A stretch of DNA of 64,000 bases from Rhodosorus marinus CCMP1338. Its lineage: Eukaryota > Plantae > Rhodophyta. The DNA is taken from the NCBI GenBank assembly GCA_029953675.1, contig JAMWBK010000005.1:2294001-2358000 (forward strand), read 5' to 3'. The notes below the pieces were generated by a model that did not search any database, was not told where the DNA came from, and saw only the letters and a program-made list of their open reading frames with translations. Position 1 is the first letter of the stretch. The number at the start of each line of letters is the position of its first letter. The position numbers were made by a program, and so were the translations under genes. Below, piece after piece: positions 487 through 45,246 of the stretch.

Positions 487-1545
487 CACGTCCTCTCAAT
501 CCAACAAACAGAATGATCACCGAAAAATAGAAAGCCAAATTTTTAACTCAGACTCCAATCCTTAAAATTTTTCCCTCTCAACTCATTTGTAAACGTCCAC
601 CAAATATATCATCTCCTAGCTCTCCGGTACCGCTTCTGAACGCAGCCTGCTCGGCCTTCAGCGCCTCCACATCTTATCAGCATGGAAGCTGACCTCGAAA
701 CCTCCCTCGCCCTCCACTGGGTTAAAGAAAAACCTCGACTATTTCTAGACGATCAAAATCATCTTTATTTTTCTAAAACAGAAACTTCGATGAAATATGA
801 ATATTCTTTTTTTGCGGAGTGAACGCAAATTCTCATGAATAGTCTTGATTAAAGACAATAGTATCTATTTCTAGATAGACACCAATTATTTAGGTTGGTT
901 CGATGAAAAGTTGGCGCTGCTGCAAAATAATCAAAAAAGTTTGCCAATATCTGGGGAATTGTCTTATAGGTGTGTCTATTTCTAGGGAGTCACTCCGGCT
1001 GACTTCGGCCGTGGCAGTTTGATGAAGTACGGCGAGAAGGTCGTCGTACGAAGAGGCAAGCTTCTGCGCGAAGTTCTGGAGTATTGCTCATACATCTCAA
1101 ACCGTTTGTTCGTGTCATGGAAAGCCAAAATGGCAGATGCCCCAGCCTGAGAAGGTCCTGCCGTCCACCAGCCCCGCGGAGCAGGAGATTTCAAACGATG
1201 ATCCCTCATGTTTCAGAGTGTTTCTTGGCCTCTAGTGCCTCGATTACACAAGTCAACCTCTTCAACAGCTACTTGATTCGTACAACCGGCACCCGCCCCG
1301 TGATCCTGAACTGAATGAGTCCGCGGATGTGGAACCCTTCTCAATTCTGGCAAGACTCCCGATGACTTTAGTATCAGCAACTTCACGCATCATGCATTTT
1401 TACAGGACTAACTGTCCCCATATGCTCATCAGTTCATCAGTTCATCCTTTCCGAGCAATGTGGTCGACGATAACGACCTCGAAGCAAGAGCACCCGTGCT
1501 GATCGGGAGGCTAGGAGTAGTCGTCTATCGAATGATGTGGACTGG

Positions 1546-2762
1546 ATGGCCTTTACAAGCTCAGGCGTGTGGGTCCGTCCAATTCTTCACCGCAAGAGGC
1601 AGATTGCGGTAAGAAACTATCTGGCAGAGTCCAAACCGGAGGAGTTGGACGCAGACGTTGCCTTGCAGGTTAATGATTTGAGCCTGGCGTGGTCGAGCGG
1701 GAGGCCTGTCCTAAAGGGTATACAATACTCACTTAGTTTACGTTTTGTTTATTTGGATTCAAGTCTGACCCTCTTTACTTGTACTTTCCCAAAAGGTATC
1801 TCGTTCAGCGTCCCAAAGGGTCAGGTGTGCATGGTTGTAGGCCCGAATGGATGCGGCAAGTCGACTCTGTTGAGACTGCTACATGGACTGACGTACGCAG
1901 ATAGCGGTAAAATCAACATTCGATCCCCCGTTGGATTTGTTTTCCAGGATCCGTCTGTTCAGGTTAGTGAACGAGACAGTATCTGCGACCGGAGACGCTA
2001 TTGCGTACTGACTACTATTTTGCAAATAATACATCGTCGTCAAGCAGATGCTATTTCCGACGGTGTTCATGGAGGTTATGTCTGGTACAGATGAAGATGC
2101 ACCAATGGAAGAGAGGGTGGAGCTCGCGACCAATGCTTTGAAGAGAACTGGAATGATGCACCTCGCAAACAAACCCACCCTCAACCTGAGCGGAGGTCAG
2201 AAGCAACGAATCGCCACTGCGACGATGCTCGTGCGAAGGCCACAGTTCATGCTCTTCGACGAAGTGACAGCTTCGCTTGATCCAGAGTACGTAGAAAGAC
2301 CTGAGCTTGACTGCTCATGCAACACGGGGGGCCCGTTCTCAAACCAACTCGCTCCCTCTTTTCAGAGCCAGAGTCCAAATGTTGGAATTTGCTATCGGCA
2401 TCGTGAAGGAGCTCAACATCGGAAGCCTTTGGTAAGCTTGGATAGAGTGCCAAGAACGAGATGCACACATATATATGACATATCGAAATCGTCTCTTGAA
2501 CTCTCACCATGGCTCAATCGCAGGGTAACACATGTTTATGACGAGCTCGAATGTGCGGATCGAGTGATTGTGTGAGTGTTTGGAACTATCCATTGCCTTT
2601 CGAAGGAGTGAAGGCTTGTCAAGGAGAGCCAATGTACATCTGAATGTTTTTGTTTTTGTTTCTCTCAGCCTGGATTCTGGAGCAATCATTGCGGACGGAT
2701 CTCTTGAAGAAGTGAAACCGACTCTCTCCGATCTATGGGCAAGGAACGAGGGGGATTGGTAG
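1546..2762 (+). CDS. ABC ATPase of the ECF-A/CbiO (plant ABCI10-like) type, plastid-targeted, multi-exon
   Basis: Motifs across spliced exons: Walker A GPNGCGKS, Q-loop GFVFQDP, signature LSGGQKQR, Walker B MLFDEVTASLDP, H-loop VTH. Starts MAF (transit-peptide-like). No transmembrane domain. Confidence 0.85.
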
Positions 2763-5109: not shown

Positions 5110-6083
5110 ATGATTCGCTCTAGTCTGCAGGTCCTCAAGAGGGTTTCATCACCGGTGGGAAGGTTGGGTAGTAGGAAGTTGAGTGGCAACGGGAGCGCCG
5201 AAGATTTCGCGAGTGCCAAATATGATGACCTGCTGGTGGAGACTCGGGATAAGGTAGGGTTAATTACACTTAACCGACCGAGTGTAATGAATGCATTGAA
5301 TTCCAATTTGTGTAATGAGATTGTCGACGCGGTGGCTTCGTGTGAGAGTGATCCGTCGATCGGGGCTATGGTCGTGACGGGATCCGACCGAGCGTTTGCG
5401 GCTGGAGCGGATATTAAGGAAATGTCCTCGAGATCATACGCTTCTGCGAGGTTCAAGCACGATCTTGGATCCTGGATTGATGTCATTTCAGGAGCAAAGA
5501 AACCCATTATCGCGGCTGTCAATGGCTTTGCCCTGGGCGGAGGATGTGAATTGGCTATGGCATGCGATATCGTTCTCGCATCGGACAACGCACAGTTTGG
5601 TCAACCAGAGGTATGCCCAGAACTGCATTTGCATGTTGCTGATCATGTTCGTCCACTTCAAAAGTGTCTTATGTGACCGTCAACAACTCTCCGTGCCCAC
5701 AGGTTCAGATTGGGACAATCCCTGGCTGGGGTGGAACGCAGAGGTTGATTCGCGCAGTTGGCAAGGCCAAAGCCATGGAGATGATCCTTACGGGTAGGAG
5801 AATGAGCGCGAGCGAGGCTGAAAGCGCGGGATTGGTTGCGAGAGTGATTCCCTCCGCTCAGCTAGTAGATGAAGCTGTGAGCGTCGGGTCAACCATTTCT
5901 TCATATTCGAGAACCATCGTCTCAGCGGCGAAGGAGTGTGTCCAGGTAGCCAGCGACATGTCCCTCCGGGACGGGGTCCTTTTCGAACGACGCCAGTTCC
6001 AGGCCACCTTCGCTCTTGAGGATCAAAAGGAAGGAATGAAGGCATTCTTGGACAAGCGCACCCCAGAGTGGAGAGACAAATAG
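5110..6083 (+). CDS. ECHS1: Mitochondrial short-chain enoyl-CoA hydratase (crotonase family), 2 exons
   Basis: Motifs LNRP..NAL, AFAAGADIKEM, GFALGGGCELAMACD, FGQPEV|QIGTIPGWGGTQRLIRAVGKAKAMEMILTG, EDQKEGMKAFLDKR. One GT-AG intron at ~5611-5703. Confidence 0.95.
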
Positions 6084-9436: not shown

Positions 9437-11544
9437 TCATGTTTCTTCTGCTGCCTCTTCATCGCTTTCCACCTCTGGCAAAGTCTTCTCTGACCGTCGA
9501 CGAATCACCGTAAACGCGGAGACGGATTCGTGCGTATATGTGGGGCTCGGCTTGCCTCCAAGTGGCGCTATTTCTGCCTGTGCGAAACAGCCCAGTAGGG
9601 AGGTTGGCGCATACCTAGCATGAAGTAGAAAGAGGGAAAGTGAGCTGGAGACTCCCACCGCCCTTCGGGAGAGCAACCTGATTCGTCGAAACGTAACCTT
9701 CAACCTACCGAATAAAGGTCTCTGTATCCACATTGCGTTCTTTGAAAAACTTGACTCCTCTGGTGACATCCGCAATCGCGAGAGTACCAACGATGGGTTT
9801 CATCACTGATCCTTCCAGGCTGTTCTGTAGCTCGTTTCTCTTCGCCCTTCCCGAATAGAGCATTGAGCAAACCCGCCCGGAACAAAAAACATATTATAAC
9901 ATCAGCTTTTCTAATCTCATCATGGCACCAGCTCATCCCGAACACACCCTACCTATCCAGTATAGTCTCAAACTCCGCCACAGCTGTCTTTGCATCTCGT
10001 ACATGAAAGCGCACCCTCTGTCCAACTCTCAAGTCATCCAATAGTTCAATACCTCCTGATCGAGGATCAATCCCTTCGATCTTCCTCACCAAATAGTCAC
10101 CATCACGAAGCCTTTCCTGAAGACATTTGAGCGCATAGGATTTCCACATTCAGACTCTGATCAAAGTGTCCGTCTACAATGAGAGCAAGAACTCCGGGGC
10201 TCGAGAAAGAACGATTAAGGATGAGCTCTCTCTCTCTCAGAGGGAGGAAATCCAAATCCACCAAACGTCTCGAAAATCTCAGGTTACCTTTGATTCATCG
10301 AGAGCAACACCCAACAGCGGATTCTTGAACAGTAAAGCCTGATCCGACTTCGTAGCCTCAGAAATCACCATCTTGAGCACTCGATCAGCGCTCATCGTCT
10401 GGAGAGCGGAACCGGAGCCGGACTTGGATGGAACAAAATCCAGCTCCAGTACACTCTTGTTCTTAACCTTTCGTACTGTGAAAACAGGTCCTTCACAGAA
10501 GAAAACAAAACAAAACGTGTTGGTCAAGCCAAGAAGCTCCGATTTGATCGCTTTGCTAATTCAAGAAGAGAGAGGGTTTGCGCAGGCGAACGGGAACAGG
10601 ATGATTCATCCGTTTCATAGATCTCTTTCGGAGCAGAATCAAAAGACGTGGTTGGTGAACAGAGCCATACCGATACCTCGCACTCCTTGAGTAACGAGCG
10701 TTTCCACTTCTATACCGCCACTGATGCTAAGACCTACTAGACCATCTTTATAGGAGCATTTGGACGTTGTTGACATGAGATCCTTGAGGAGGGTTGCGTA
10801 GATATGTCCCGGATTTGGTCCTGAACCACCGACGACTCCTCCGACTTTCATGCTGCCCGGGTAGGCGAAGTCTAGTCCGCGGATGAACTTCTCTAGAGCT
10901 CCAGAAGACTGGAATGTCGGGTTGCAGAAGAGGAAAAATGTAGGAAGTGATCTGGGCTCTGGCCCGCCTACGACTTCCTTCCAGCCTTCTTGTGGTCCGT
11001 CCAGATTCGGCAAGTCGCTCTCATTGACATGAAAAAGATTGATCTCCGCGTCGGGGATTCTTGCCAGAGTGACACCTACAGCCGGTATTGACTCCACCTC
11101 CGTACATCTTCCCATGCTATCAGCTCCTAGGACTCCAGCTACCGTGCCTCCGATGACGTTCTGGATTCCAGGAATCAATTCTCTGATCTGTTGCGCAGCA
11201 AACTCCACGCTTTCTTTCCTCAAACCGACTTTTCTCTCTTCATAAATCGTGCTGACGTACAGAATCGCGACATCCGGAACGCACCCAACCGGCAGACTAA
11301 ACAGAGCCTCATCCACAGCATCCCTCAATGCCTCAGAGAGTCGTTTCTTCGTCGATACCGCACTTGAGAAACAAAGATCATCCTCAACCACAGACCCACG
11401 AACTCCTCCCCCGCTTCTTCCAAAGCTCATTCCACTCTGCATAACCACACCACCAACCCTCCATCTCCTCTGACTCACTAGCCCTTCCCTCTGAACCCTC
11501 CTCAAATTCCGAAATCCGCACCCAAACACAAACCCAGTATCCAT
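9437..11544 (-). CDS. FIST N/FIST C domain protein, plastid-targeted, multi-exon
   Basis: FIST-N-like segment (SAVST..L..AL..AV, VIGGTVAGVLG, DFAYPGSMKVGG) and FIST-C-like segment (YLVRKIEGIDPRSG, LRVGQRVRFHVRDA, GCFAQAEIAP). Starts MDTGF, transit-peptide-like. Confidence 0.8.
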
Positions 11545-12316
11545 CCTTATTGCAGCTTTCCTACCCACCCACTTGCTCCTCTTCCTCTGTTATCGCCTCA
11601 CTAACCACCCGTCACAACATCCTCACCAATACTCTCAGTGCTACGTTTTAGCCCCATCACCCCAATTCCTCCTCCGAGATACGGTCCATCGATCTTCTTC
11701 AATCTGAAGCAAGCATCTCATTGGATTGCTTTCCTCATTAGCAAGACTCTTGTAAGGTGACCCGCCGACTTTTGCGTGTGAGCTTTTCTCTGTCTCCTAA
11801 GGATCAGCCTGAGTCATGAAGAGGATGCAAAGGTCTATATCGCATCCAGATGCACATGGACGTTTCGCCTCTATCGATCCTCGTGAAGATGGATATTTTC
11901 GTGAAAGCTGCTGTACGACAGTTTTTTTAGTGCACCGGCCTCAGCGGTTGGTGGTTGACCCACAAGAAACAACTGCGTATTGGCTGACGAACACAGAAGT
12001 ATCCAGTAACAGCCAGATTGACTGACAGGGACTAGTCCTCGTCGATATGTAAGGGTTTCACTGAGATAGCTATCCTCAATAAATCCCGTCTCACGATTTA
12101 AGCACTGTGCAAGATGGTCAGTGGGGCCAGCAGCCTCAAGAGAATACATAACATACGAATGGATGCCCCATCTTGTATCGCTAAAGAAATGACCTTGCTT
12201 CATCCTAATCATCAACTCAACTGGGTCTTCGAGCGTGCATCGATTGAACTACTTTGCGAGCGACATCCAAGGCAGCATGTCCTGACAAGAACTGGACAAA
12301 AATAAAAAGTTCGTCA

Positions 12317-21929: not shown

Positions 21930-23030
21930 TTACTTGTGGGACATGCAATGCTTATTTACATGGCTCCGTTCCTTAAAGGACTTTCCACAAGTCTCGCAGG
22001 AGTACAGACGCCGATTTTCATGAACTGCCATTACGTGTCGGGCCAGCTTGGACCTTGCTCCAAAGCATTTCCCGCACACATCGCAACGACAACTAGAAGT
22101 CATTAGATGGAACACGCGAACGTGCTCATTCAAATGTCCTGTTTGAGAGAAGGTCCGTCGGCAGTACTGGCACTGGTGACGCTTAAAGCCACAATGCACG
22201 CTTTCATAATGCCTACGAAGATCATACGGCTTTACAAACCCTGCGCTACATATTGGGCACACTTTCTCGCTCTTCAGGGCATGGGAAGCCAGCATAGTCG
22301 CATTTCTGCTCAGTTTCTGTTTCTTCTCTACGTAGGTTAGCTGCACATATTTTTGACAAGCTTCCACGCTCTCCTGCTCCTCCCAATGGTGGGACGTAAG
22401 CCGAACAGTTTTCTTCCCCGCTGTCAACTTCCAGATTGATTTCACAGACTTCTCCTTGAGCTGCACTGCCTTGGTCAATCTTGTGTGTAGTGGAAGTCCA
22501 TCATATGCCATATCTGCAGCCTGCTGGGTGCATGAACAAGCCCAACCGTCCAGCAGGCAAGCAGGGCATTGTCTCAAAATCATTGATTTCTCAGGATTGC
22601 CCTTCACCTCACCGTTCTCTCCAACCAGCTGATGGTTACAGGAAACCGCACCATTCTCAGCTTCCACGAGGTGTCCCAACACAATTAGGCCATCTAACCT
22701 CTTGCTGAACATGGTTTCCGAGCGGATGCCGTCTCCGACCACGGCATATCGGACAAGGTTGGCTACCGTAGAATTATCAAGGTGTCGTGGAGGTCCAGAC
22801 TTGCCCAACTGCCATCCGAAACCTAGCATTGAGTGGTTCTGCGAAAACAAAAACCATAGCTCAGGTCTATGGAAGTGATGGGCCAACATGTTATCGCACT
22901 TTCCCTCACAGACGTTGTCCACCACAACTGCAAGGCCATCCTTAGTATTCGATGGGAGCGAGGTCGGTCCTGTCTTGAACAGCAGCCAATCTTTGATCTC
23001 CGAAAAGCCCGCTTGGAGAGCACTCGCCAT
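21930..23030 (-). CDS. C2H2 zinc-finger protein with four C-terminal fingers; upstream exons possible
   Basis: 376-codon ORF ending CPICSAGF..LRRHYESVH, CQYCRRTFSQTGHLNEHVRVFH, CDVCGKCFGARSKLARHVMAVH, CETCGKSFKERSHVNKHCMSH. An additional CPAC...CSC cluster lies in the middle of the protein. Confidence 0.9.
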   Translation of the reverse strand: MASALQAGFSEIKDWLLFKTGPTSLPSNTKDGLAVVVDNVCEGKCDNMLAHHFHRPELWFLFSQNHSMLGFGWQLGKSGPPRHLDNSTVANLVRYAVVGDGIRSETMFSKRLDGLIVLGHLVEAENGAVSCNHQLVGENGEVKGNPEKSMILRQCPACLLDGWACSCTQQAADMAYDGLPLHTRLTKAVQLKEKSVKSIWKLTAGKKTVRLTSHHWEEQESVEACQKYVQLTYVEKKQKLSRNATMLASHALKSEKVCPICSAGFVKPYDLRRHYESVHCGFKRHQCQYCRRTFSQTGHLNEHVRVFHLMTSSCRCDVCGKCFGARSKLARHVMAVHENRRLYSCETCGKSFKERSHVNKHCMSHK

Positions 23031-23657
23031 TGTCTTCAAACCCTTCCAAACGAGCTCCAATCGTGTCTTAAGGATACCCGCTCAGAGGAAAGATTGATCC
23101 CCTACCGAGCGGAAGCAAACCCGCTAATGAGCAACCTCTACCACAAGTTCAAACCCAGGACAAGCCTCGCCTCGAAACAAAGTTGACACAGCTGGCAGTT
23201 CCCAAGCCGCACGAAACCAAACGGCGGGAACAACTCCCGAGACCAAGCAGTATTTGACGAACTTTGCTCATCTCCCCCCCAACCCAACATCCCAACAACA
23301 ACGAAGTTCTTGCTGAACGAAGAATCCTTTGTCAATTCCGATTTTCTTTCATCCCGTTGCCAATTCGCAACTGAGCTTTCGGACCTAATCTCCACCGAAA
23401 CTTGAAGACAAAGAGAGCAGCCTGTCCGGAGCTTTTCAGTTATATCTCCCGGTTTCACGGGAAAACAGTCCAAGCCAGTTCCCAATGGCAAAAGCCTTTC
23501 ACTAGGGGTCCATGAGAGATCGTATTTCCCCAAATCCTTCAAAAATACTTCATCAAAAAATCGATGAGTTCCTGCTCCACACAAGAGAGGGGTTGTTGTC
23601 TTCTGACTTGGAAACTCGTTTTCCAGAGGTTTCCACGATCCTTACATGTCTTAACAA

Positions 23658-27267: not shown

Positions 27268-28047
27268 TGCTGTATCTGAATTCTAAGGCTAAGCCTGTGC
27301 TGCGTTTTCAACCCTCGCTTCGCATTTCAACTCCCCAATTTGAGCTCTTGATATTGCCACAGCCAAGAGCAGTTCGCAAGCTTGCTGTCTGCTTGCCAGG
27401 CTGACTGGCTCATTCGAAGATTTCGCCATTGAATTCGCGTTTCTGGCAGAGGAGACTTGCAGGGGGAAGGCATAGCGCTAATAGCGGTCGGGATAGCGCA
27501 TCAATACAGGGGAGGGAGCTTTTTGGAACCCTCTCGATCTCGATTTAAGTTTAATTCAGACGGCATTTGACGTCTTACCACCTCCACTGACACTGTTAGC
27601 AATCTAAAACCTGCGTCAGGTCTCTCCATGATTGGTAAAGGACGCGAGCAATTCGCGACTGTCGAAACCCCTATCAGGCAAGGATCAGATATTTGAACTC
27701 AGTGGGGACTTCAGGTGACCAGTGTAAAACATTTCCGATGCATGCTACGAGAGCTTGCATCGGAAACGATGTGTCCAATGACTCTGCCCCAAATACCTCC
27801 AGACCGTGCTTGTTGCAACGCCATGGTTTCAAAAAGGAACGCGCTTTCTCATCTTCAGAATTAAAGAATACAAATAGGACTCTGGGCGAATCGAATTCCC
27901 CTCTGCCTTCTCCCACCAAACCCAAGTGTGGCTAGACGAGCTTCACAATGGATCAGCGGCAGCAAAAAGCGCCGGAGGGGGATGGCGTGTTGCAGTGGGG
28001 TGGTCAAGGAAAATGTATTATTAGCTTGTGCGCTTTTGGAGCAAGTG

Positions 28048-28740
28048 ATGACTGAAAGACTCTACTTCAACGATAGCTATTGCTTTGAAGCTTCATCCTT
28101 GGTTACCAAGGCAGAATTCGATACGGAAAAGTCCGAATGGAGCTTGGTGCTGGACAGAACGATCTTTCACCCGTCCGGGGGGGGACAGCCTTCGGACGAA
28201 GGACAAATTAGTTCGCATCGAGTGTTGTCCCTCGCCACGGACAAGGACCTGGCTATTATCAGGCACAATGTCGCTTGCAAAGAAGGAGCGTCATTTAGCC
28301 CGGGGGACTTGGTTTTCCTCAAAGTGGATGAAGTAGTTCGACGACGGCATGCAAGACTACATTCTGCGGGACATCTGATGGACGTTGCAGTGCGAAAGAT
28401 GGGGCTGATGTTCGAACCATCCAAAGCCTACCATTACCCAGAGGGATCGTACGTTGAGTATCATGGAAGTGTCCCAGTGGAAGAGCGTGAATTGATAGCA
28501 AAGAAAATTATGAGCGTGGCGAATGAGACCATTCAGAAAACGAAAGACACCGACCTTGTCAAGAGTAGGGTAGGAGAGGACGGGACTCGTCTTGTATTTC
28601 TCTCCTCTGAAGATATCGGCTGTCCTTGCGGAGGCACTCATGTTAAACATGTCAAAGAGATTGAACACGTTACAGTTACAAGGCTCGTCAAAAAAAAAAA
28701 GTTCATCCGCGTTTGCTACTCCGTTACTAACTTACAGTAA
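28048..28740 (+). CDS. alaX: Free-standing alanyl-tRNA editing protein (AlaX/AlaXp); start may be upstream at 27982
   Basis: TERLYFND, VLDRTIFHPSGGGQPSDEG, zinc motifs HSAGH (HxxxH) and CGGTH (CxxxH). Confidence 0.9.
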   Translation: MTERLYFNDSYCFEASSLVTKAEFDTEKSEWSLVLDRTIFHPSGGGQPSDEGQISSHRVLSLATDKDLAIIRHNVACKEGASFSPGDLVFLKVDEVVRRRHARLHSAGHLMDVAVRKMGLMFEPSKAYHYPEGSYVEYHGSVPVEERELIAKKIMSVANETIQKTKDTDLVKSRVGEDGTRLVFLSSEDIGCPCGGTHVKHVKEIEHVTVTRLVKKKKFIRVCYSVTNLQ

Positions 28741-29572: not shown

Positions 29573-31452
29573 CTAGAACCGCATCACATTCGCCACAATC
29601 GGTGTTTTGACTGCTAAATCTGAGATAGCTCCAATACACACTTGCACTTGTCCCTTACGAATCCGAATCCAAGTTCCGAAGCTATCAGCAACAGTCTTGC
29701 TAATGAGCCCAACCATTATCCCGCTGGTTGAGCTTGGCACACTCTGATCAGAAACGCTCTGGCAGGAGATACGATCTGGCTTCACTACCATTCGAACGCG
29801 CTCACTTGAGAAAGGCCCCCCGGGATTGACAACAAGCGTCGACACCCGTCTCCTACGTGTATCTTCCTCCTTCGGAGTTGCGCTGACAACGCAAACAGAA
29901 GCAATCCTCTTAAGGCTCTTGGGTTTAACAGAGAGAAAGCTAGAGGCTGGTTGCGAAGCCACGTTGGCAGTCGTGAACACAGCAACTTCATCAAAGCTTG
30001 GTCTCTTCCAATTCCTCGACATCGGTGGACTAAAATGCCTCGAGCAGACCCTCCCAGCTCCAAAAGCAAGACTTTTGCTCTTGACTCTCCTTGCACACTC
30101 GTCCTTCGACATGCTCCTCCGACAAATTCTAAACAAGCCTTGAGTACGAGTATACCAAACACGAACAACTCCATCCCATTCCTCAGTACCGACTAACGCA
30201 ACGCAGATCTCCACTTCTCCGTCGGCGCCAACCGCACCCAGCCACGCTACTGTACGCACATCTTTCTCCTCGGAGAGGATATGCTGCTGCGTAAGTTGAA
30301 GGTCCCGGAAGGCAGCCCCATTCCTCAGCTTCGTTGTCTTGCATAGACTACCTTTCTTGCCAAACGCGAAGTCGACGTACCCTGAAGCCTTGTCGCCAGA
30401 AGAGATTGGCTCCGGGTTCGAAGTCTCCACAGGCTTTTTGGGGTCGTCCGTTGCTTTCGGGTCTGGCCCCGGAGACTCTCCAGAGCCACCCTGAACAACT
30501 GACAGTGAGCACCCAAGCTCCTGCGATGCATCAGTCAAAAACTGCTTATGGCTCGGATCAGAGAGTTTGGTGAAACCTGCCTCCATGTCTGTTCGACAAT
30601 AACCTGTACAAACCACAGAGATAGATGTTCGGCTACCCCGTTAGATTCATGATGGCAGAGAAACACTTCACCACCGGGTTGAACGGCTTCAACGACTGAC
30701 TTACCCCCAACAGTTATGCCGAAACTAAGAATACCGACCAACACATCATCCTCCGCTTTCCCTCCCCGGATTACCAAAGGGCCTCCGCTATCTCCGTAGC
30801 ACGCAGATCCCTCGCTGCCGTCATAGTTTCCGTCCGCGCAGATAAACTTCGATGTATCCACGGATATCTTTTTCGTCACCTTGCATTTTGAGGAAGTAAC
30901 AATCTTTGTGTCCACCACCCTCATCTTCCAATCATATTCAACGTATGGAGTATAATCACCGAAACCAATCGCATCGGCAACGGTTCCAGACGGAATCGTA
31001 TCGAAGCTAACGGAAATGGGCTTCACAATTGTGGACGACATTGGGGACTTCAGCTTTATCAAAGCCAAGTCATATCCGTCTCCGTGAGTGAAAAGGCTCC
31101 AACCATGTGGCATTCTAATATCTGCGGCTTCTCGACATCCGGGGCTCTTCGGGTCGGCAAGTACTGTACCAGCACAAACCTTTACCTTTGCAGACGCGTC
31201 CAGATTCGACACGCAATGCGCCGCCGTAGCGACAACATCGGTGTCAACGAAAGCGCCTGAACAAAGAAGAGAATCGCTTCCATACTCCTCCACGAACAGT
31301 GATGCCATGTAAGGTGCTTGCCTCCAGCTTTTAACCAAATCTCCGTTTATAAGCCGAGCAGAACTGCCCAGTCTTTTTAGAACCTTTGCACTAGAGAACT
31401 GCATCCCACACGCGACCAGCGCCACAAACCAAAGCTGCAAGAGCCTCCTCAT
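29573..31452 (-). CDS. Secreted S1A (trypsin/chymotrypsin-fold) serine protease with a ~330-aa C-terminal extension, 2 exons
   Basis: Signal peptide, activation-like site SAR|LING, and catalytic triad motifs TAAHC, YDLAL and GDSGGP. A GTAAGT...TACAG intron joins it in frame to the 29573-30616 ORF (..FGITVG|YCRTDMEAGFTKLS). Confidence 0.85.
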
Positions 31453-34400
31453 ATCTGCCTTTTGATAGAACATACAATATATCAATGTCAGCTTCCCAAT
31501 CTAGACATCACTTCTTAGCGTTCCGACTACCTGAGATTCCTCTGAACCACCGCGTATTGCACACACTCACAAGTGACACGCTTTCTCGAAACTAATGCCT
31601 ATATACACCCTCAACCTCTCCCTCGTACATATGTGTGAGCTTCGATGTGCCAGGGATTTGGATCAAGAGTTACAACATGCGAGCATCGGGACGGGGGTGC
31701 GATTCTCCAGCGAGGGGGGCTCCACGAAAAAAAAGCAGAGAACTCCAGCGATCTTGGATTAGCTGAAGAATATTTCAAACGTTTTCCAACTGCTGACAGG
31801 GATTGTATCAGGGTGAAACTGGGTATTCGATCCGTATCCATCTCGAAGGGGTAAGCCAACAGCATACTTTGCCATTCTTTCATTATTCATACATTTTTAC
31901 CGCCCGTATGTTTGCGGAAAGCTTATGATTTTATCAATTTTTTATCCTTCTTCGAAACCAGCGCTTTGGCTAAAATAATCTGTATTCAGCAAATAATGAG
32001 ATACCTTTCCGGCACCGAATTCGGCCGTAACGCCTAGAGAACAGGACCTCCTAGCAGACACGAACAGGACTTGATGAAAATATCAGCATTCTCTTGCACA
32101 CACCTCCACGGCGTGGTCTCCAGTACGTTACACGGCCGAGGAAGTCAAAAAAAACGCATTAAAATATACATAGCCACTTTGCGTCTACACCAGTTCTTGC
32201 ACTAGTAGAATCATCTTGCTAGCTAGGAGTAAAGTCAGTCAGTAGAAACTATGACACCCAGCCCCCGGGGTCACGAAAAGAGTGTAGAGGCGTTGAGAGA
32301 AACACAATACCGTCTAGCAAATTCCGACATACCCGTGTACCGAAAAAAAAAGCCTCGTTTCGCGACGGGTTTGCCATACTGTATGTTACGCGCTTTCGAA
32401 CGTTCGAAAAGTGCGAAATGTGCTTCTATTGGTAATACAATTTTTGTATCATTTATGTTGAACAAATAAATTCTAATCGCTTTAATTCCAATCGAAAGAA
32501 TTTGTTAATTCTAATCAGTGTCGCCACTTGCGATTAGCCAATCACAGCTGTAGGTATTGACCCCATCACGTCTAAGCATAATAACGAGGTCACCCCTGGT
32601 TTTCTGATGCGAAGATCCTATTGTCAGTCATTCGGGCGCCTACCTGAGCCCGGCTGATCGTGATATTTTTTCCCCGATATCATTGACTTGGAACCCTGAA
32701 ACCCTAGGAATACGCGGTAAACAACACGCATCCCTAGGGGGGGGTAAGCTACTCGAAGAAATAGGGCGAAAGTTTTGTGCAAGCCCTACCAGCGGATTCG
32801 AACGGAATTACAAAAAAGAAATTATTAACTGTTTATTGTGGCTTGTTTCTTACTGTCCAATCATATGTGAAGTGCCCAAACTAGCGCTTCAGAAAGTTTA
32901 TATGACATAATTACCGGTTGAAACCGCGTTTTATCACCGACAGGTATTTATTCGCGGAAATCTTTGTCATAGGACGAGATTTCAGACAACTGATCAAATA
33001 TTTATGCAAAAACAATCTTGGGGTCACCAGAAAATCCCCCCCCCCCCTTTCGGAAGCATTATCTTGGACCATTTCCTAGAAGATACTTCCCAATGGACGA
33101 AAAACAACAAAAATCGGTATAAATCTTGACGTATATTCATAATTATCGTGAATCATCCTTTTCAATAATATGGTAACAATGTCACGAAAGAACTAGTTTG
33201 TGTAGAAACAAACCTCTATTCACAACTTCAGGTGTAAAAAGTCAAGCTGTGATTTCTTGACATTGGTCAGGGTGTGGAGGACGTTCCTAGCGTCCGGGAA
33301 AAGTTTCATCTTTTTTATGTTCCTTAGATATCTCCTGTCCAATCACTTTACCCTCAGGAATAAGTCTAAACAAGAAACACCACCGGGGGGTTACTTGCCC
33401 CCTGATGCTATCTAAGAAAGAAGTTCTGTGAGAGACAGTGCGGGGAAGGGGGGGGGAGTTCACCCGGAAAATTAACTGGAACTTGGGAGCGAACGGTTGC
33501 AATTTGCTTCCACGCCGCCTGTTCTCCCGTTTCAATTGAATATTGATTACTTCTGAAGAAGACTATTTTCGGCTATGCCTGTTGGCCGTCAACTCTGGCT
33601 ATTCGAGGTAATAGAGTTGTGGAAAGGCACAAATTCCGCGTTATCTTTGCTTACAAACAAAGTACGGTTGCGTATTTTTCTTGGCCGCTTGAGTGTATAT
33701 AACCGGGGATAAAGCAAAAAAATCATTTCTATCTGAATACAGTTTTTTCGTCGCGTTGTAAGCCATTTGTCCAACAACCTACAGTTGGGGCGATCTTGCC
33801 AGGTAAAATTAGAAACGCAACGGGTGGGGTGGGCGGTGGGGATCCCCATACACGTTCATGTTATAACAAGAGACCGACTTCATTTCCACATTTTCGCTCC
33901 TCGCAGTCTTCGTGAAGGGGTAGGAGCGACAGCAGATGGGCTACGCGTGGGCACAAAAAAATTCTCAAAAAGAGGTTCTACCGACCTAACGCCTTGTTGC
34001 TCGTCCCTATGAACAGGCTTTTGCTACAAGAGCAGGTGACTGCTTGGAAGATCTTTTATTGTAAAGAGCCTCAGCCAGTAGCGCGGAACTTCCTATAGTT
34101 TTGCACTTATGGAGAAGTTCGTTGAAAGCTCGGTTGGGGCGCAGCTGGGTGGAATATGCTCATCATGAGGCATACGCAATAGCGCGCGGGTGCCTGCCGA
34201 AGCATCAGGATGTTGAAAAGGTGGCTTAGCTACTCTCAATCTTCAGCCTACCTTCTGTGCTTTATTCCCCACCCCTGTTTGCCCTGGCGCTAGTCCGTCT
34301 CATATCATAAGTTCTCGCAAATACAATACTACTCATCGACTACCCAATGAATGCAAAGGACTCGCAATCTACTCACTGAAAAATTTCCATGCGCGCTAAA

Positions 34401-41619: not shown

Positions 41620-44600
41620 ATGATGCGTGGTGAGGTCTTTACCCGGAGACATGGGGGATCGGCTTTCCTTATTTTGCTCTCAATATGTACACTGATTTCG
41701 GGGCAAGGGATAGGACAACTTTCGATTAATTTTCAGAGTTCTAGCACAGGCAGCTGCTCTGCGGAGGTGCTCGGGGACTACGGACTACCTTATGCCGAGA
41801 AGACTAACGGATTTACTTACGGATGGCTGCAAGCATCTACACTAGAGCCCGTGGATGCTACTGCCAACGGGAGAGATAGAGGTGAGGCATCAGATGACAG
41901 CTGCTTGTTTAGAACCTTTATGCACATGCAGTACGGCGACTGCTGCTCGGATGAACCGAACGAAGGGCTACTCGAGGATATTGTATGGCGGATAGCGCTG
42001 CCGAATGGACAGTATAACGTGGATGTGCTGTGCGGTGAACCGACTAGTTTGAATTCGGTTCACGCAGTCACTGCCAACGGTATAACGATCATTGAACCGA
42101 CTGAACCCACGGCTTTGGTCCCTCAAGTTGAAGGCTCAGGACTGGTGTCGGTGTCGAATGAAGTTCTTACCCTGTCGGCGACAGGAGGCTCCAATACACT
42201 TCTCAGTCACATTTTGATTTCGACGAGTTCCGGAATGCAAGTAGGCTGCGTTCCGTTCCCGTCTGCGTTTGACGGCCAGAGCATCTCCGAGCTGGACTGC
42301 GACCAAGTGAGGGTCTCTGTTCCGTATGAGATTTCTTACGGGAGCGCGGATCAGGGCATGCTGAAGGACAGATCCGGGATGGGCACCGGTTTTACGATGG
42401 TGTTTCCGAGTTCAAAACAGTCACCGGCATATACAAGCGAGAACTTGATGGTGAAGGATAACGCTCTAGTTATTAAGAGCACTCCCGGGCGAATGAACTC
42501 CCCGCACTTCGACCACACGAATGCCCTCGGTGTGGGTCTTCCTCTACCTGACAATGACCTGAACATTACGGCACAGTTCAGATACCCAGATATCGAGAGC
42601 TCAAAGTGGGAAAGGGCATGCGTCTACTTCGGTATTAACGATCAAACTCATATAAGGCTGTGCTACATTTCAACAGGGGATGGCGGAAGGGTCTTCCTGC
42701 ACTACGTGAAAGATGATGTAAGGATTCTCAGGAGCTACAGGTGTGCTACCCTCACCGACCCGGAGAGGATCATTACCTTCAGAATAGAACTTTACTCGCT
42801 TGCAGACCAGGCCAGGTTCTTCTATCAAGTTGGCGGAGATGCTGAGGAGGTCAGCTTTAGAAACATCACCCTCGGGGCGGAGATGTTCAGCAAAGACGCC
42901 GCTGGGATAGACTTTACAGTCGGGACTAGGAGCTATGCAGGCGTTTTCGTCTCCCAGGCAATGCGAAAATACGGACAGCTTGCGTTCGAGCTGTTAAGCT
43001 TCAGAGTCACCCAGATTCCGCGGGAAAACGAGGGTGAAGGAGATGATGAACTCGAATTTGACACGTGGTATTTGGAAGGGCTGAGGAACCCCACCTCCGT
43101 TAGGTATGGGCCCGACGGGAAGCTCTACGTTGCGATGGTGGATGGGAGGATCGCCGTTGTCGAGCTAGATCATGACGCCAAAGAAGAATTGAGTCGGAGA
43201 ATCCTCCAGCCGCTCGGTAGTTGCTTGCTTCTCGGCTTGGAGTTCGATCCGGATTCCACTGCAGACAACGTTGTGTTGTGGTTAAGCCATTCCGACGCTT
43301 CACAAATCGGGGGTGCGGCGAATTCTGGAACGATAAGCAAGGTGTCTGGCCCAGACATGAGCATCATTGAGGACGTCATTATCGGCTTGCCTAGGGCATC
43401 TGCAAATCACGCCCCGAATCAGATCAGGTTTGGGCCGGACGGAAGACTGTTCATTGCTGTAGGCGGAAACACAGGGGGTGGAACCCCAAACGATCAAAAT
43501 TCAGATTTCGGATTTCGGCCGGAGCAGTGTCTGGCTGCTGCTCTGCTTGTCGCAGACGTGAAAGCTGAAGGCTTCGATGGGGACTGCACGCCAAAGCAGG
43601 ATCCAGCGCAGATGGATCTGACAGGCGTTGCGTGGGAGTGCGAGGAAGATATAGACTGCGATGTTAAAGTATACGTTACGGGCACCCGAAACCCTTACGA
43701 TTTTGAATTCTACAATGGACATATTTACATGACGGATAACGGATTGGGAGGAAAAGGAACAGCTCCGAAGTTACCAGACGACTATACTTTCGGGGACTCA
43801 TGCCATGGTCCCATTCTAGGAGACGAAATATTGGCCTTGGATCCTGGAAAGAGAGATGACCTACTCTTTGACGTGGTGGAAGGTGCTTACTACGGGCATC
43901 CAAACCCTGCGAGACGTGAATGCGTGTTTTTCGGTGGCAACCCAACGTCGGACCTCGACTATCCAATCCCAAAGTCTCCGGTTCAAGGCGGGGATCAGTA
44001 CTACATGCAGTTTGGAAAGTATCGAAGGGGTACGCAACCGGACCCAATGTTCACTTTGCCCATGATGAGCCTCGGGCGGAGTCGCTCTGCGAACGGAATC
44101 ATAGTCTACAGGTCAGATGTCTTCTGTGGCAAGCTGAAGGGTGACATATTGACAACGTTCTACTCCCAAGAGGACCAAGTTCGTCGAGTGGTACTCAACG
44201 ACGACGGGACGGAAGCTGTGCGAGATGAGACCTTGCCGTACACCACTGAAGCCACTGGCGCCGATCGGGAATTGCGAAATCCTCTTTGCATTGAGCAGGA
44301 CGGTTACGGAAACCTGTACATAGGAGAGTTCTTCGGAGCACGAGTGCGAGTTCTCGACCCTGTTGCAACGCAATGCTCGCAATCCCTCTCAAGCAGTAAT
44401 CGAAAAGCCCAAACACCACGCGGCCTAGAACACTCAGCTGCAATCGGAATAAACGCGCGTGTCCTTGCACTCGGGGGTGCTCGTGGTGGCGTCGCGACAG
44501 ATGAGGCTCATGCTTTCGACAGCTACAGAAATGAGTGGACGAGCCTCAGACTTCCGATAAAGAGATTTGCAGCTGGAGCAGTCCGCATGGGAAAACATGA

Positions 44601-45246
44601 CGTAGCGATCTTGGGCGGCATCGACGAATCAGGTTCAATTGTAGATTCATTTCACGTCCTTGGGATGGAAGATATGAAACTACGAAACTCTGACTATCGA
44701 CTACCTGCGGCTCGGGCGCATTCCTGTGTTGTTGACCTCAGCGATGAGTTCCTTCTCGTTGGTGGAATCGACCGAGACGGGGCGGCGACCTCTACCGTCT
44801 TCCAGTTCAACAAGAGAACTGGGAATTGGCGCCAAGCCTCACCCTTGGCTATTGGACGGTATGGCGCATCGGCAATTGCGATTGGCAAGGAGATCCTTGT
44901 GTGTGGGGGTATTTCTGCTCGGGGAGAAGAAACGAGGACCTGCGAGATTTTTGACGGCGCAAGCTGGAGGATGGCAGGGGAAATGAACCACGCGAGAGCC
45001 TTCGCAGGGGCTGTTTCAGTGAGCGGAAGAGCAGTCATCAAAGGCGGTCAGAGTGGAGAGTCTTGTATCTACAATACAGTCGAGGAGTATGATCTCAAGA
45101 AAAACACTTGGAAGGAGTTGAAACCACTCAACGCCGCCAGGAGTGCAGCAGCTGTTGTTCGAGCTGGTTCCAGCACCATCCTTATGGGTGGAAGAACTAA
45201 CGGAGTAGGAGCTCAAGAATTCGGCGAAATTTTGCACTACATGTAA
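41620..45246 (+). CDS. Intronless 1208-aa secreted multidomain protein: galactose-binding/malectin-like module, lectin-like module, glucose/sorbosone (PQQ-type) dehydrogenase propeller, and Kelch propeller
   Basis: Signal peptide. INFQ..GDYG..TYGW..WRIALPNGQYNV (carbohydrate-binding-like). GLRNPTSVRYGPDGKLYVA, ANHAPNQIRFGPDGRLFIAVG, TGTRNPYDF and GAYYGHPNP (GSDH-like). About six GG...W Kelch repeats from ~44420. Confidence 0.85.
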   Translation: MMRGEVFTRRHGGSAFLILLSICTLISGQGIGQLSINFQSSSTGSCSAEVLGDYGLPYAEKTNGFTYGWLQASTLEPVDATANGRDRGEASDDSCLFRTFMHMQYGDCCSDEPNEGLLEDIVWRIALPNGQYNVDVLCGEPTSLNSVHAVTANGITIIEPTEPTALVPQVEGSGLVSVSNEVLTLSATGGSNTLLSHILISTSSGMQVGCVPFPSAFDGQSISELDCDQVRVSVPYEISYGSADQGMLKDRSGMGTGFTMVFPSSKQSPAYTSENLMVKDNALVIKSTPGRMNSPHFDHTNALGVGLPLPDNDLNITAQFRYPDIESSKWERACVYFGINDQTHIRLCYISTGDGGRVFLHYVKDDVRILRSYRCATLTDPERIITFRIELYSLADQARFFYQVGGDAEEVSFRNITLGAEMFSKDAAGIDFTVGTRSYAGVFVSQAMRKYGQLAFELLSFRVTQIPRENEGEGDDELEFDTWYLEGLRNPTSVRYGPDGKLYVAMVDGRIAVVELDHDAKEELSRRILQPLGSCLLLGLEFDPDSTADNVVLWLSHSDASQIGGAANSGTISKVSGPDMSIIEDVIIGLPRASANHAPNQIRFGPDGRLFIAVGGNTGGGTPNDQNSDFGFRPEQCLAAALLVADVKAEGFDGDCTPKQDPAQMDLTGVAWECEEDIDCDVKVYVTGTRNPYDFEFYNGHIYMTDNGLGGKGTAPKLPDDYTFGDSCHGPILGDEILALDPGKRDDLLFDVVEGAYYGHPNPARRECVFFGGNPTSDLDYPIPKSPVQGGDQYYMQFGKYRRGTQPDPMFTLPMMSLGRSRSANGIIVYRSDVFCGKLKGDILTTFYSQEDQVRRVVLNDDGTEAVRDETLPYTTEATGADRELRNPLCIEQDGYGNLYIGEFFGARVRVLDPVATQCSQSLSSSNRKAQTPRGLEHSAAIGINARVLALGGARGGVATDEAHAFDSYRNEWTSLRLPIKRFAAGAVRMGKHDVAILGGIDESGSIVDSFHVLGMEDMKLRNSDYRLPAARAHSCVVDLSDEFLLVGGIDRDGAATSTVFQFNKRTGNWRQASPLAIGRYGASAIAIGKEILVCGGISARGEETRTCEIFDGASWRMAGEMNHARAFAGAVSVSGRAVIKGGQSGESCIYNTVEEYDLKKNTWKELKPLNAARSAAAVVRAGSSTILMGGRTNGVGAQEFGEILHYM

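Follow-up and report, generated by a model that had tools for sequence, protein, structure and literature searches.

A red-algal member of a bacterial protein family that joins a concanavalin A-like domain, a glucose/sorbosone dehydrogenase-type propeller and a Kelch propeller

Results

A single-exon gene for a four-module protein

The 64-kb stretch of DNA analysed here (64,000 nucleotides of contig JAMWBK010000005.1; hereafter the window) is nuclear DNA of a Rhodosorus-like red alga. By far its longest open reading frame (ORF) is uninterrupted by introns and encodes a chain of 1208 residues, in which four modules, D1 to D4, follow a signal peptide-like N-terminus: two beta-sandwiches, a propeller of the glucose/sorbosone dehydrogenase (GSDH) type and a Kelch propeller (Table 1). 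Judged by its sequence, this protein represents the eukaryotic branch of an extensive, uncharacterised family of bacterial proteins, whose hallmark is a single chain that combines a concanavalin A (ConA)-like domain with GSDH-type and Kelch propellers.

The gene is genuine. A protein from the Rhodosorus marinus transcriptome (MMETSP/EukProt) matches the product end to end, with 92% identity and 100% coverage. The ORFs on either side are pieces of eukaryotic genes according to Pfam (C2H2 zinc fingers, a trypsin-like protease, and partial alanyl-tRNA synthetase, enoyl-CoA hydratase and ABC domains), and the G+C content at third codon positions (GC3) is 0.55 in the focal gene and 0.49-0.55 in its neighbours. 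Given eukaryotic flanks and a GC3 within the range of the neighbours, the gene is neither contamination nor a very recent arrival; the independent transcript likewise speaks against a bacterial contaminant, as does the 3.19-Mb contig that holds what we take to be the window's own protein, and we reject that possibility. The partial domains in the neighbouring ORFs look like exons of intron-split genes, while the 3.6-kb focal gene is intronless. Two antisense ORFs that lie inside it were taken as chance ORFs.

Table 1. Features of the focal gene, of its product and of the surrounding window.
Feature	Position in window	Strand	Evidence or remark
Coding sequence, single exon, 1208 codons plus stop	41620..45246	+	ORF list; full-length 92% identity to Rhodosorus marinus transcript protein
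Signal peptide-like N-terminus, residues 1-27	41620..41700	+	Basic N-region, hydrophobic core 13-26
D1, residues 28-205, beta-sandwich, optional in family	41701..42234	+	All-beta model
D2, residues 206-474, ConA-like beta-sandwich, always precedes propeller in family	42235..43041	+	Foldseek
D3, residues 475-925, six-blade GSDH-type beta-propeller, probable catalytic module	43042..44394	+	pLDDT, Foldseek, hhalign
D4, residues 935-1208, six-blade Kelch propeller, probable scaffold or binding platform	44422..45243	+	Pfam Kelch_1, PDB Kelch matches
His597 = sGDH His144 = YliI His147 (general base)	43408..43410	+	Alignments; invariant in 37 sequences
Arg690-Asn691 = sGDH Arg228-Asn229 = YliI Arg214-Asn215	43687..43692	+	Alignments; invariant in 37 sequences
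Asp706-Asn707-Gly708 = YliI Glu232-His233-Gly234	43735..43743	+	hhalign; N707 invariant, G708 at least 90% conserved
Asp747...Tyr757-Tyr758-Gly759-His760-Pro761 = YliI Asp239...Asn249-Tyr250-Gly251-Trp252-Pro253	43858..43902	+	hhalign
Asn887-Pro888-Leu889 at the YliI Arg341-Ile342-Arg343 motif, both arginines absent	44278..44286	+	hhalign; P888 and L889 invariant in family
TGTAAA, about 70 nt past the stop codon	45316-45321		May be a polyadenylation signal
Antisense ORFs inside the gene	43676..44047; 44694..45041	antisense	Taken as chance ORFs
ORF with ABC transporter domain, partial	1537-2094	+	Pfam
ORF with partial enoyl-CoA hydratase	5110-5676	+	Profile 2-126 of 251
309-aa ORF, FIST N domain	10639-11568	-	E 3e-9
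376-aa ORF, several C2H2 zinc fingers	21930-23060	-	Pfam E 8e-13; typical eukaryotic transcription-factor fragment
Partial alanyl-tRNA synthetase ORF	27928-28740	+	Profile 470-550 plus SAD domain
347-aa ORF	29573-30616	-	No Pfam match
Trypsin-like serine protease ORF	30535-31485	-	Pfam E 1e-28; overlaps the start of the 347-aa ORF

The N-terminal modules

The initial annotation of this locus, made by a model from the letters and their ORFs, had proposed a signal peptide, two carbohydrate-binding or lectin-like modules, a GSDH-like propeller and about six Kelch repeats, and this layout is confirmed. A basic N-region and a hydrophobic core make up the putative signal peptide, and the five most hydrophobic 19-residue segments of the whole protein all start at residues 13-18. 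A hydrophobic maximum confined to the N-terminus fits a soluble protein that is secreted, and we infer that this one probably is.

The region of the two N-terminal modules is predicted as all-beta, with a predicted local distance difference test (pLDDT) score of 87.7; residues 1-474 gave nothing in Pfam or NCBIfam scans. Foldseek matches D2 best to the C-terminal domain of glycoside hydrolase family 43 (GH43) beta-xylosidases (E 1e-9), and also to the small protein 3MEP (template-modelling score 0.72-0.73) and to legume lectins. Of the two proposed modules, then, both appear as beta-sandwiches and the term lectin-like suits the modelled fold of D2, at fold level only; D1 has no Pfam match. In relatives, D1 produces sub-threshold matches to PF21254 (galactose-binding-like, E about 1e-3), and it is possibly a galactose-binding-like carbohydrate module. 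By eye, a D1-type motif recurs in the proteins P0004-6, P0008, P0010-12, P0014, P0039-43 and P0109.

GH43 beta-xylosidases (2EXH, 6MS3) resemble the window protein in pairing a ConA-like beta-sandwich with a catalytic propeller. Their five-bladed propeller is unrelated to that of GSDH, however, their domain order is the reverse, and the Pfam scan of the window protein contained no GH43 signal.

A large bacterial family with the same architecture

How widespread is this architecture? A collection in which each bacterial species is represented by a single genome yielded at least 583 matched stretches coding for a relative; among the matches listed are Myxococcota, Chloroflexota, Actinomycetota, Cyanobacteria, Planctomycetota and Gammaproteobacteria (Marinobacter, Ferrimonas, Cellvibrionaceae). 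When D2 and D3 together were searched exhaustively against 1.8 billion cluster representatives, 485 matched at E<=1e-30, a number that rose to 2757 at E<=1e-3. The full-length architecture is found in Actinomycetota (Georgenia, Oceanitalea, Motilibacter, Frankiales) with 30-33% identity over 79-89% of the query, and metagenomic relatives reach 35-49%; Kelch-bearing relatives overall span 30-49% identity over 79-99% of the query. At 70 of 80 bacterial loci the D2-D3-D4 core is a single ORF, and most of the other ten have no detected Kelch. These calls rest on the D2, D3 and D4 models, that of D1 being unreliable: unrelated immunoglobulin-like repeats were aligned under D1 in the actinobacterial rows.

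In the databases the relatives are named 'Kelch repeat-containing protein', 'BACON domain-containing protein', 'N-acetylneuraminic acid mutarotase' or 'hypothetical'. Neither the architecture nor the extent of the bacterial family that shares it appears to have been described before, and the same goes for its association with exopolysaccharide genes and its apparent transfer to red algae. GSDH-domain genes have already been counted in red and brown algae (PMC12115072; bioRxiv 10.1101/2024.02.19.579948), so an algal GSDH domain is no novelty in itself.

The modules also occur in other company. P0109, a metagenomic surface protein of 6260 residues, has several ConA-like and several D1-type modules, two GSDH-like propellers, and PKD-like and malectin-like regions; both propeller copies keep the His, Arg-Asn and GHPNP motifs. 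D1, D2 and the propeller thus travel as a cassette outside the Kelch architecture too. Two further variations were seen. In Halospina denitrificans (L074, 396-8058) two full-length family paralogues stand in tandem on the same strand, their frames overlapping by a few bases, and in P0031 (L006, 10001-15718) an N-terminal metallophosphatase of the purple acid phosphatase type is fused to the core.

D3 is homologous to soluble PQQ sugar dehydrogenases

The window protein matches the GSDH family PF07995 with 31.9 bits against a cut-off of 25, covering profile positions 1-148 only; a bacterial relative matches positions 203-323. The model of D3 has a pLDDT of 93.4, and its top 29 Foldseek matches in the PDB are soluble glucose dehydrogenase (sGDH), aldose sugar dehydrogenases (3A9G, 2ISM, 2G8S), fungal enzymes of auxiliary activity family 12 (AA12) and the hedgehog-interacting protein HHIP, with E-values down to 8e-15. 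Over the whole propeller, hhalign aligned a 14-member profile of the family with a YliI-family profile at a probability of 97.9% (E 4.8e-13, 315 columns). The YliI profile consisted of seven sequences, namely E. coli YliI, three solved homologues and three orthologues; the homologue search with YliI had returned only close enterobacterial orthologues (>=77% identity), and sequences of solved structures were added for depth. A profile of the first four blades retrieved sGDH from the PDB at E 7e-8, with His597 aligned to His144 and Arg690/Asn691 to Arg228/Asn229. The full-propeller profile was swamped by designed 'Pizza' and NHL-repeat proteins that align to the last blade, which resembles NHL repeats. 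By these alignments, D3 is a true homologue of the soluble sugar dehydrogenases that use pyrroloquinoline quinone (PQQ).

The best fold match, sGDH of Acinetobacter calcoaceticus (1C9U/1CQ1), shares the six-blade propeller and the His and Arg-Asn positions. Identity is only about 15%, the sequence alignment reaches only the first half of the propeller, and the window family differs by large insertions with conserved cysteines, by its NHL-like last blade and by the fused ConA-like and Kelch modules. YliI/Asd of E. coli and its relatives (2G8S, 7CDY, 2ISM, 3A9G) are homologous along the whole propeller, sharing the His, the Arg-Asn pair, an acid-x-Gly loop and Tyr-Gly-x-Pro; in contrast to the window protein, YliI is a periplasmic single-domain enzyme that acts on free sugars. 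In the insertions relative to YliI (window 43516-43710 and 43801-43923; residues 637-680 and 728-768) sit Cys656/Cys680 and Cys728/Cys768, which are invariant in the family and probably form disulfides, fitting an extracellular protein.

Fungal AA12 enzymes (CcPDH 6JT5, TrAA12 6H7T) invite comparison as eukaryotic, secreted, multi-modular proteins of GSDH-type fold with carbohydrate-binding modules. The initial annotation had drawn on them for background. That fungi do not synthesise PQQ, and that AA12 is the only eukaryotic PQQ family known, agrees with the literature (PMC6881810); these enzymes depend on PQQ from other organisms (PMC6881789, PMC6881810). Any kinship with them, however, is one of fold: three sequence or profile searches of the PDB contained no AA12 chain, and the window protein is not AA12 by sequence. 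CcPDH is partnered by an AA8 cytochrome and a family 1 carbohydrate-binding module, the window protein by ConA-like and Kelch modules, and its family is of bacterial rather than fungal origin.

A putative cofactor site, partly conserved

Does the propeller keep the centre of the PQQ enzymes? The His at codon 43408 and the Arg at codon 43687, which the initial annotation had placed where the catalytic His and the PQQ-binding Arg are expected, prove to be exactly His597 and Arg690, the counterparts of sGDH His144 and Arg228. In sGDH, His144 is the base and Arg228/Asn229 polarise the quinone (PMC6881810, PMC6881789). The loop that aligns with Asp706-Asn707-Gly708 carries the catalytic Ca in enzymes of this type (PMC6881810). 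Asp747 is invariant in the family, and the position of Tyr758, equivalent to YliI Tyr250, is mostly Tyr. We take Tyr250 and Glu240 of YliI to be part of the catalytic Ca site, with Glu240 as a ligand; in sGDH we take this site to be the Gly247/Pro248 loop.

Three positions have changed. YliI Glu240 corresponds to Leu748, and the anchor arginine pair, Arg341/Arg343 of YliI, is lost to Asn887 and Leu889; all three residues are invariant in the seven-sequence YliI-family alignment. The two arginines presumably match sGDH Arg406/Arg408, which bind the carboxylates of PQQ. With three of the PQQ/Ca anchors missing, PQQ use is uncertain. Yet the loss of the arginine pair is not decisive, since AA12 replaces one bacterial arginine by a residue from elsewhere in the chain, Arg273 (PMC6881789), and the window family has further invariant or near-invariant basic residues in R592, R633, R765 and H760. 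Of the earlier label, a PQQ-type sugar dehydrogenase, the homology and the invariant His and Arg-Asn stand and the cofactor is no longer secure; from the residues kept and lost, PQQ dependence of the family protein is a tentative proposition to which we give slightly less than even weight.

A classical PQQ/Ca dehydrogenase, tethered to the wall and oxidising free or reducing-end sugars at C1 with PQQ from associated bacteria, would agree with the homology to sGDH and YliI and with the retained His and Arg-Asn, and borrowed PQQ has precedents in E. coli YliI and fungal AA12 (PMC6881810, PMC13088180). We nevertheless consider it rather improbable: three anchor residues are missing, the Pfam scan detects no fused electron-acceptor domain such as a cytochrome, and placement in exopolysaccharide operons (see below) suggests a polymer as substrate instead of free sugars.

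Alternatively, the propeller might dispense with PQQ and use the conserved His, Arg, Asn, Tyr and acids with a metal, as a lyase, hydrolase or epimerase controlling the length or structure of exopolysaccharide. Loss of the carboxylate-binding arginine pair and of the Glu240 equivalent favours such cofactor-independent processing, the pairing of a ConA-like domain with a propeller recalls GH43, the gene is integral to exopolysaccharide operons, where chain-trimming enzymes are generally common, and relatives are frequent among Cyanobacteria, Chloroflexota and Actinomycetota, where PQQ synthesis appears to be rare. We regard it as unlikely, if deserving of serious attention, because the invariant residues that remain are those facing quinone and substrate in sGDH, because known lyase or hydrolase propellers are absent from the top PDB fold matches, and because R592, R633, R765 and H760 could stand in for the lost arginines in the manner of AA12 Arg273 (PMC6881789).

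A proposed division of labour between the modules

Conservation was counted in a family alignment of 37 sequences, with an overall identity across phyla of about 31%. In D3, 39 positions are invariant and 53 near-invariant. Many of these are polar, and the invariant ones include R592, H597, N600, N617, T618, E635, Q636, R690, N691, N707, D747, S823 and E903. In D2, 11 residues are invariant and 14 near-invariant (among them N301, E331, E363, D426 and D431), and the conserved Asn, Asp and Glu could make a sugar or metal site. In D4, invariance is confined to the Gly, Trp, Pro and Leu of the Kelch repeat, whose arginines are near-invariant, and D1 has no invariant position and one near-invariant glycine. 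This pattern suggests that catalysis or cofactor binding falls to D3 and that D2 is the partner it always needs, with the Kelch propeller serving for scaffolding or binding.

D4 is a Kelch propeller by Pfam (Kelch_1, PF01344, E 1.2e-21) and by its matches to Kelch domains in the PDB (E 1.6e-23), with six repeats in which the Gly-Gly and Trp positions are invariant. That it might be a second catalytic module, as had been suggested, is unlikely when only structural residues are invariant. Galactose oxidase, of family AA5, has a seven-blade Kelch propeller and conserved Tyr, His and Cys copper ligands; an identity of this kind was rejected for D4, which has six blades and no invariant or near-invariant Tyr, His or Cys.

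Might D4 instead be a sugar mutarotase of the NanM type, fused so as to feed the correct anomer to the dehydrogenase? Several relatives are named 'N-acetylneuraminic acid mutarotase' by JGI and NCBI, and in bacterial relatives the score against the Pfam NANM model exceeds the cut-off, P0004 for example reaching 81 bits. The window protein, though, stays below the cut-offs of the NanM/YjhT family (PF24996, 33.3 against 45; NF010730, 28.7 against 416; TIGR03547, 28.6 against 256), the matches cover part of the model only and reflect generic Kelch repeats, and not one polar residue of the Kelch module is invariant. A fusion of two enzymes is therefore very improbable.

A further candidate function is binding alone, the propeller recognising polysaccharide or protein in the manner of HHIP and the chain serving as an adhesin, lectin or matrix organiser. 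HHIP (3HO3, 7PGM), an extracellular eukaryotic protein with a GSDH-type propeller, is among the fold matches, one entry being heparin-bound; two propellers with two beta-sandwiches make a typical binding architecture, and in the giant surface protein P0109 the propeller, D1 and D2 occur twice beside PKD and malectin-like domains. HHIP is, however, a binding protein that is not known to have the catalytic residues, whereas the window family keeps them invariant. That His, Arg-Asn, Asn-Thr, Glu-Gln, Asp and Ser stay unchanged from phylum to phylum, when overall identity is so low, is more typical of a catalytic or cofactor site, and even the copies in P0109 retain His, Arg-Asn and GHPNP. We think a non-catalytic role improbable.

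Exopolysaccharide gene neighbourhoods

Four of the six bacterial contexts inspected are Wzx/Wzy exopolysaccharide clusters. P0008 is surrounded by genes for a glycosyltransferase of family 4 (GT4), a priming transferase, Wzz/GNVR, Poly_export, family 2 glycosyltransferases (GT2) and a flippase. In Oceanitalea, the start of the gene overlaps an upstream GT2 gene by 4 bases, with Wzy and a priming transferase further upstream and a pyruvyl transferase, more GT2 and a flippase downstream. The Motilibacter gene lies between GT4 and flippase genes, and that of P0031 adjoins exosortase EpsH/EpsI, GT4, GT2 and Wzy, with a sulfatase gene nearby.

Across the 80 loci, 47 have at least one match of glycosyltransferase or polysaccharide type, and 31 (about 40%) have a flippase, polymerase, priming transferase, chain-length protein, outer-membrane exporter or pyruvyl transferase within 10 kb. 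An association that recurs in several phyla is unlikely to be inherited synteny alone. The density of exopolysaccharide genes is flat over 0-8 kb from the focal gene, a result that is neutral for the association because such clusters exceed the flanks examined.

Several points tell against this link or narrow it. Two of the six inspected contexts are not polysaccharide clusters, and about 60% of the loci carry no specific exopolysaccharide marker in a search seeded with a few annotated neighbours from the inspected contexts. The roughly 1.6 glycosyltransferase or polysaccharide-type genes per 10 kb around the focal gene compare with an expectation of about 0.1 that is an estimate from general knowledge and not a computed control. 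Operon context in bacteria, moreover, does not transfer to a eukaryote. The neighbourhoods of the bacterial relatives nonetheless lend independent support to a link with extracellular polysaccharide, which the initial annotation had proposed from the domains.

A recurrent pairing was also seen in these regions: near the homologue, a polysaccharide pyruvyl transferase gene is paired with an FrhB/FdhB-like gene in Oceanitalea (L003, 15144-17695) and Motilibacter (L004, 23089-25148), and again in L027, L032 and L035.

Origin of the algal gene

In a tree of the D2 and D3 region, six eukaryote-like sequences form one clade (bootstrap 100/100): the window protein, the R. marinus protein, two Logan-assembly proteins with 48-49% identity and two more distant proteins, one of them from a contig (L089) that ends in poly(A). 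This clade groups, at 99/100, with a Myxococcota-like set of bacterial sequences. Among these are one from a Myxococcota genome and P0008, whose DUF4215 cysteine-rich repeats are typical of myxobacteria. By eye, it is also in this set that the family carries D1. Such a topology fits horizontal transfer from a Myxococcota-like bacterium into the algal lineage, the direction being deduced from the breadth of the bacterial distribution. Acquisition from a Myxococcota-like donor is thus the most likely origin of the gene, with the caveat that donor and direction are themselves deductions, from a neighbour-joining tree of D2 and D3 only (65 sequences, 648 columns). What had been put forward as an algal quinoprotein system is better described as a side branch of an extensive bacterial family, and horizontal transfer is the simplest account of its presence in the alga.

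Other features of the window

The remaining ORFs with domain assignments are listed in Table 1. On the reverse strand, the trypsin-like ORF and the 347-residue ORF whose start it overlaps could belong to a single gene that a short intron or a shift of frame interrupts. The TGTAAA downstream of the focal gene recurs in the related transcript contig L089 (3737-3742), about 20 nt ahead of the poly(A) run.

Discussion

What does such a protein do in a red alga? Taking the evidence as a whole, we lean somewhat towards a secreted four-module protein, the eukaryotic branch of a bacterial family, that acts as an enzyme on extracellular polysaccharide; its substrate and chemistry we can only infer. Members of the Stylonematophyceae, the class of Rhodosorus, make polysaccharide that stays bound to the cell and is carboxylated or sulphated (PMC9031348). 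Such an acidic or sulphated polymer would be held extracellularly by the beta-sandwiches and the Kelch propeller, while the GSDH-type propeller modified a sugar unit through an sGDH-like centre. In that centre, His597 would be the base and Arg690/Asn691 the pair that polarises a carbonyl, with a metal bound by Asp706-Asn707-Gly708 together with Asp747. Our single likeliest guess at the chemistry, offered tentatively and with a little under even confidence, is a Ca-assisted, PQQ-dependent oxidation of sugar; a different way of holding PQQ, or a reaction without cofactor, would fit the same reading. AA12 enzymes oxidise sugars such as L-fucose and D-arabinose (PMC6881810).

Besides the missing anchor residues and the limits of the neighbourhood data, the literature weighs against this reading: full-text searches for the ConA-like/GSDH/Kelch architecture found no paper and no characterised member. 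They equally brought up no characterised homologue of the same architecture with a different function, the outcome that would have spoken against the initial annotation.

A bolder version of the idea, which we consider speculative and on present evidence unlikely, is that these proteins make up a new class of extracellular enzymes that modify polysaccharide and belong to the Wzx/Wzy pathways of many bacterial phyla, either as PQQ oxidases with a new mode of holding their cofactor or as cofactor-free GSDH enzymes, and that a red-algal lineage captured one to remodel its sulphated capsule. If true, it would found a carbohydrate-active enzyme family and represent a second, independent eukaryotic catalytic use of the GSDH fold.

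The weight of the finding depends on which of these readings is right. If the protein is a binder or an ordinary trimming enzyme, the gene is one more routine case of horizontal transfer. Were the activity real, a family with hundreds of cluster representatives would gain a function, and exopolysaccharide biosynthesis a step that has gone unrecognised. Should PQQ be used, this would be a second eukaryotic lineage, after the fungi with their AA12 enzymes, to rely outside the cell on a bacterial vitamin-like cofactor. For the algae themselves, a real activity would mean that a bacterial matrix-remodelling gene has been recruited for the red-algal capsule.

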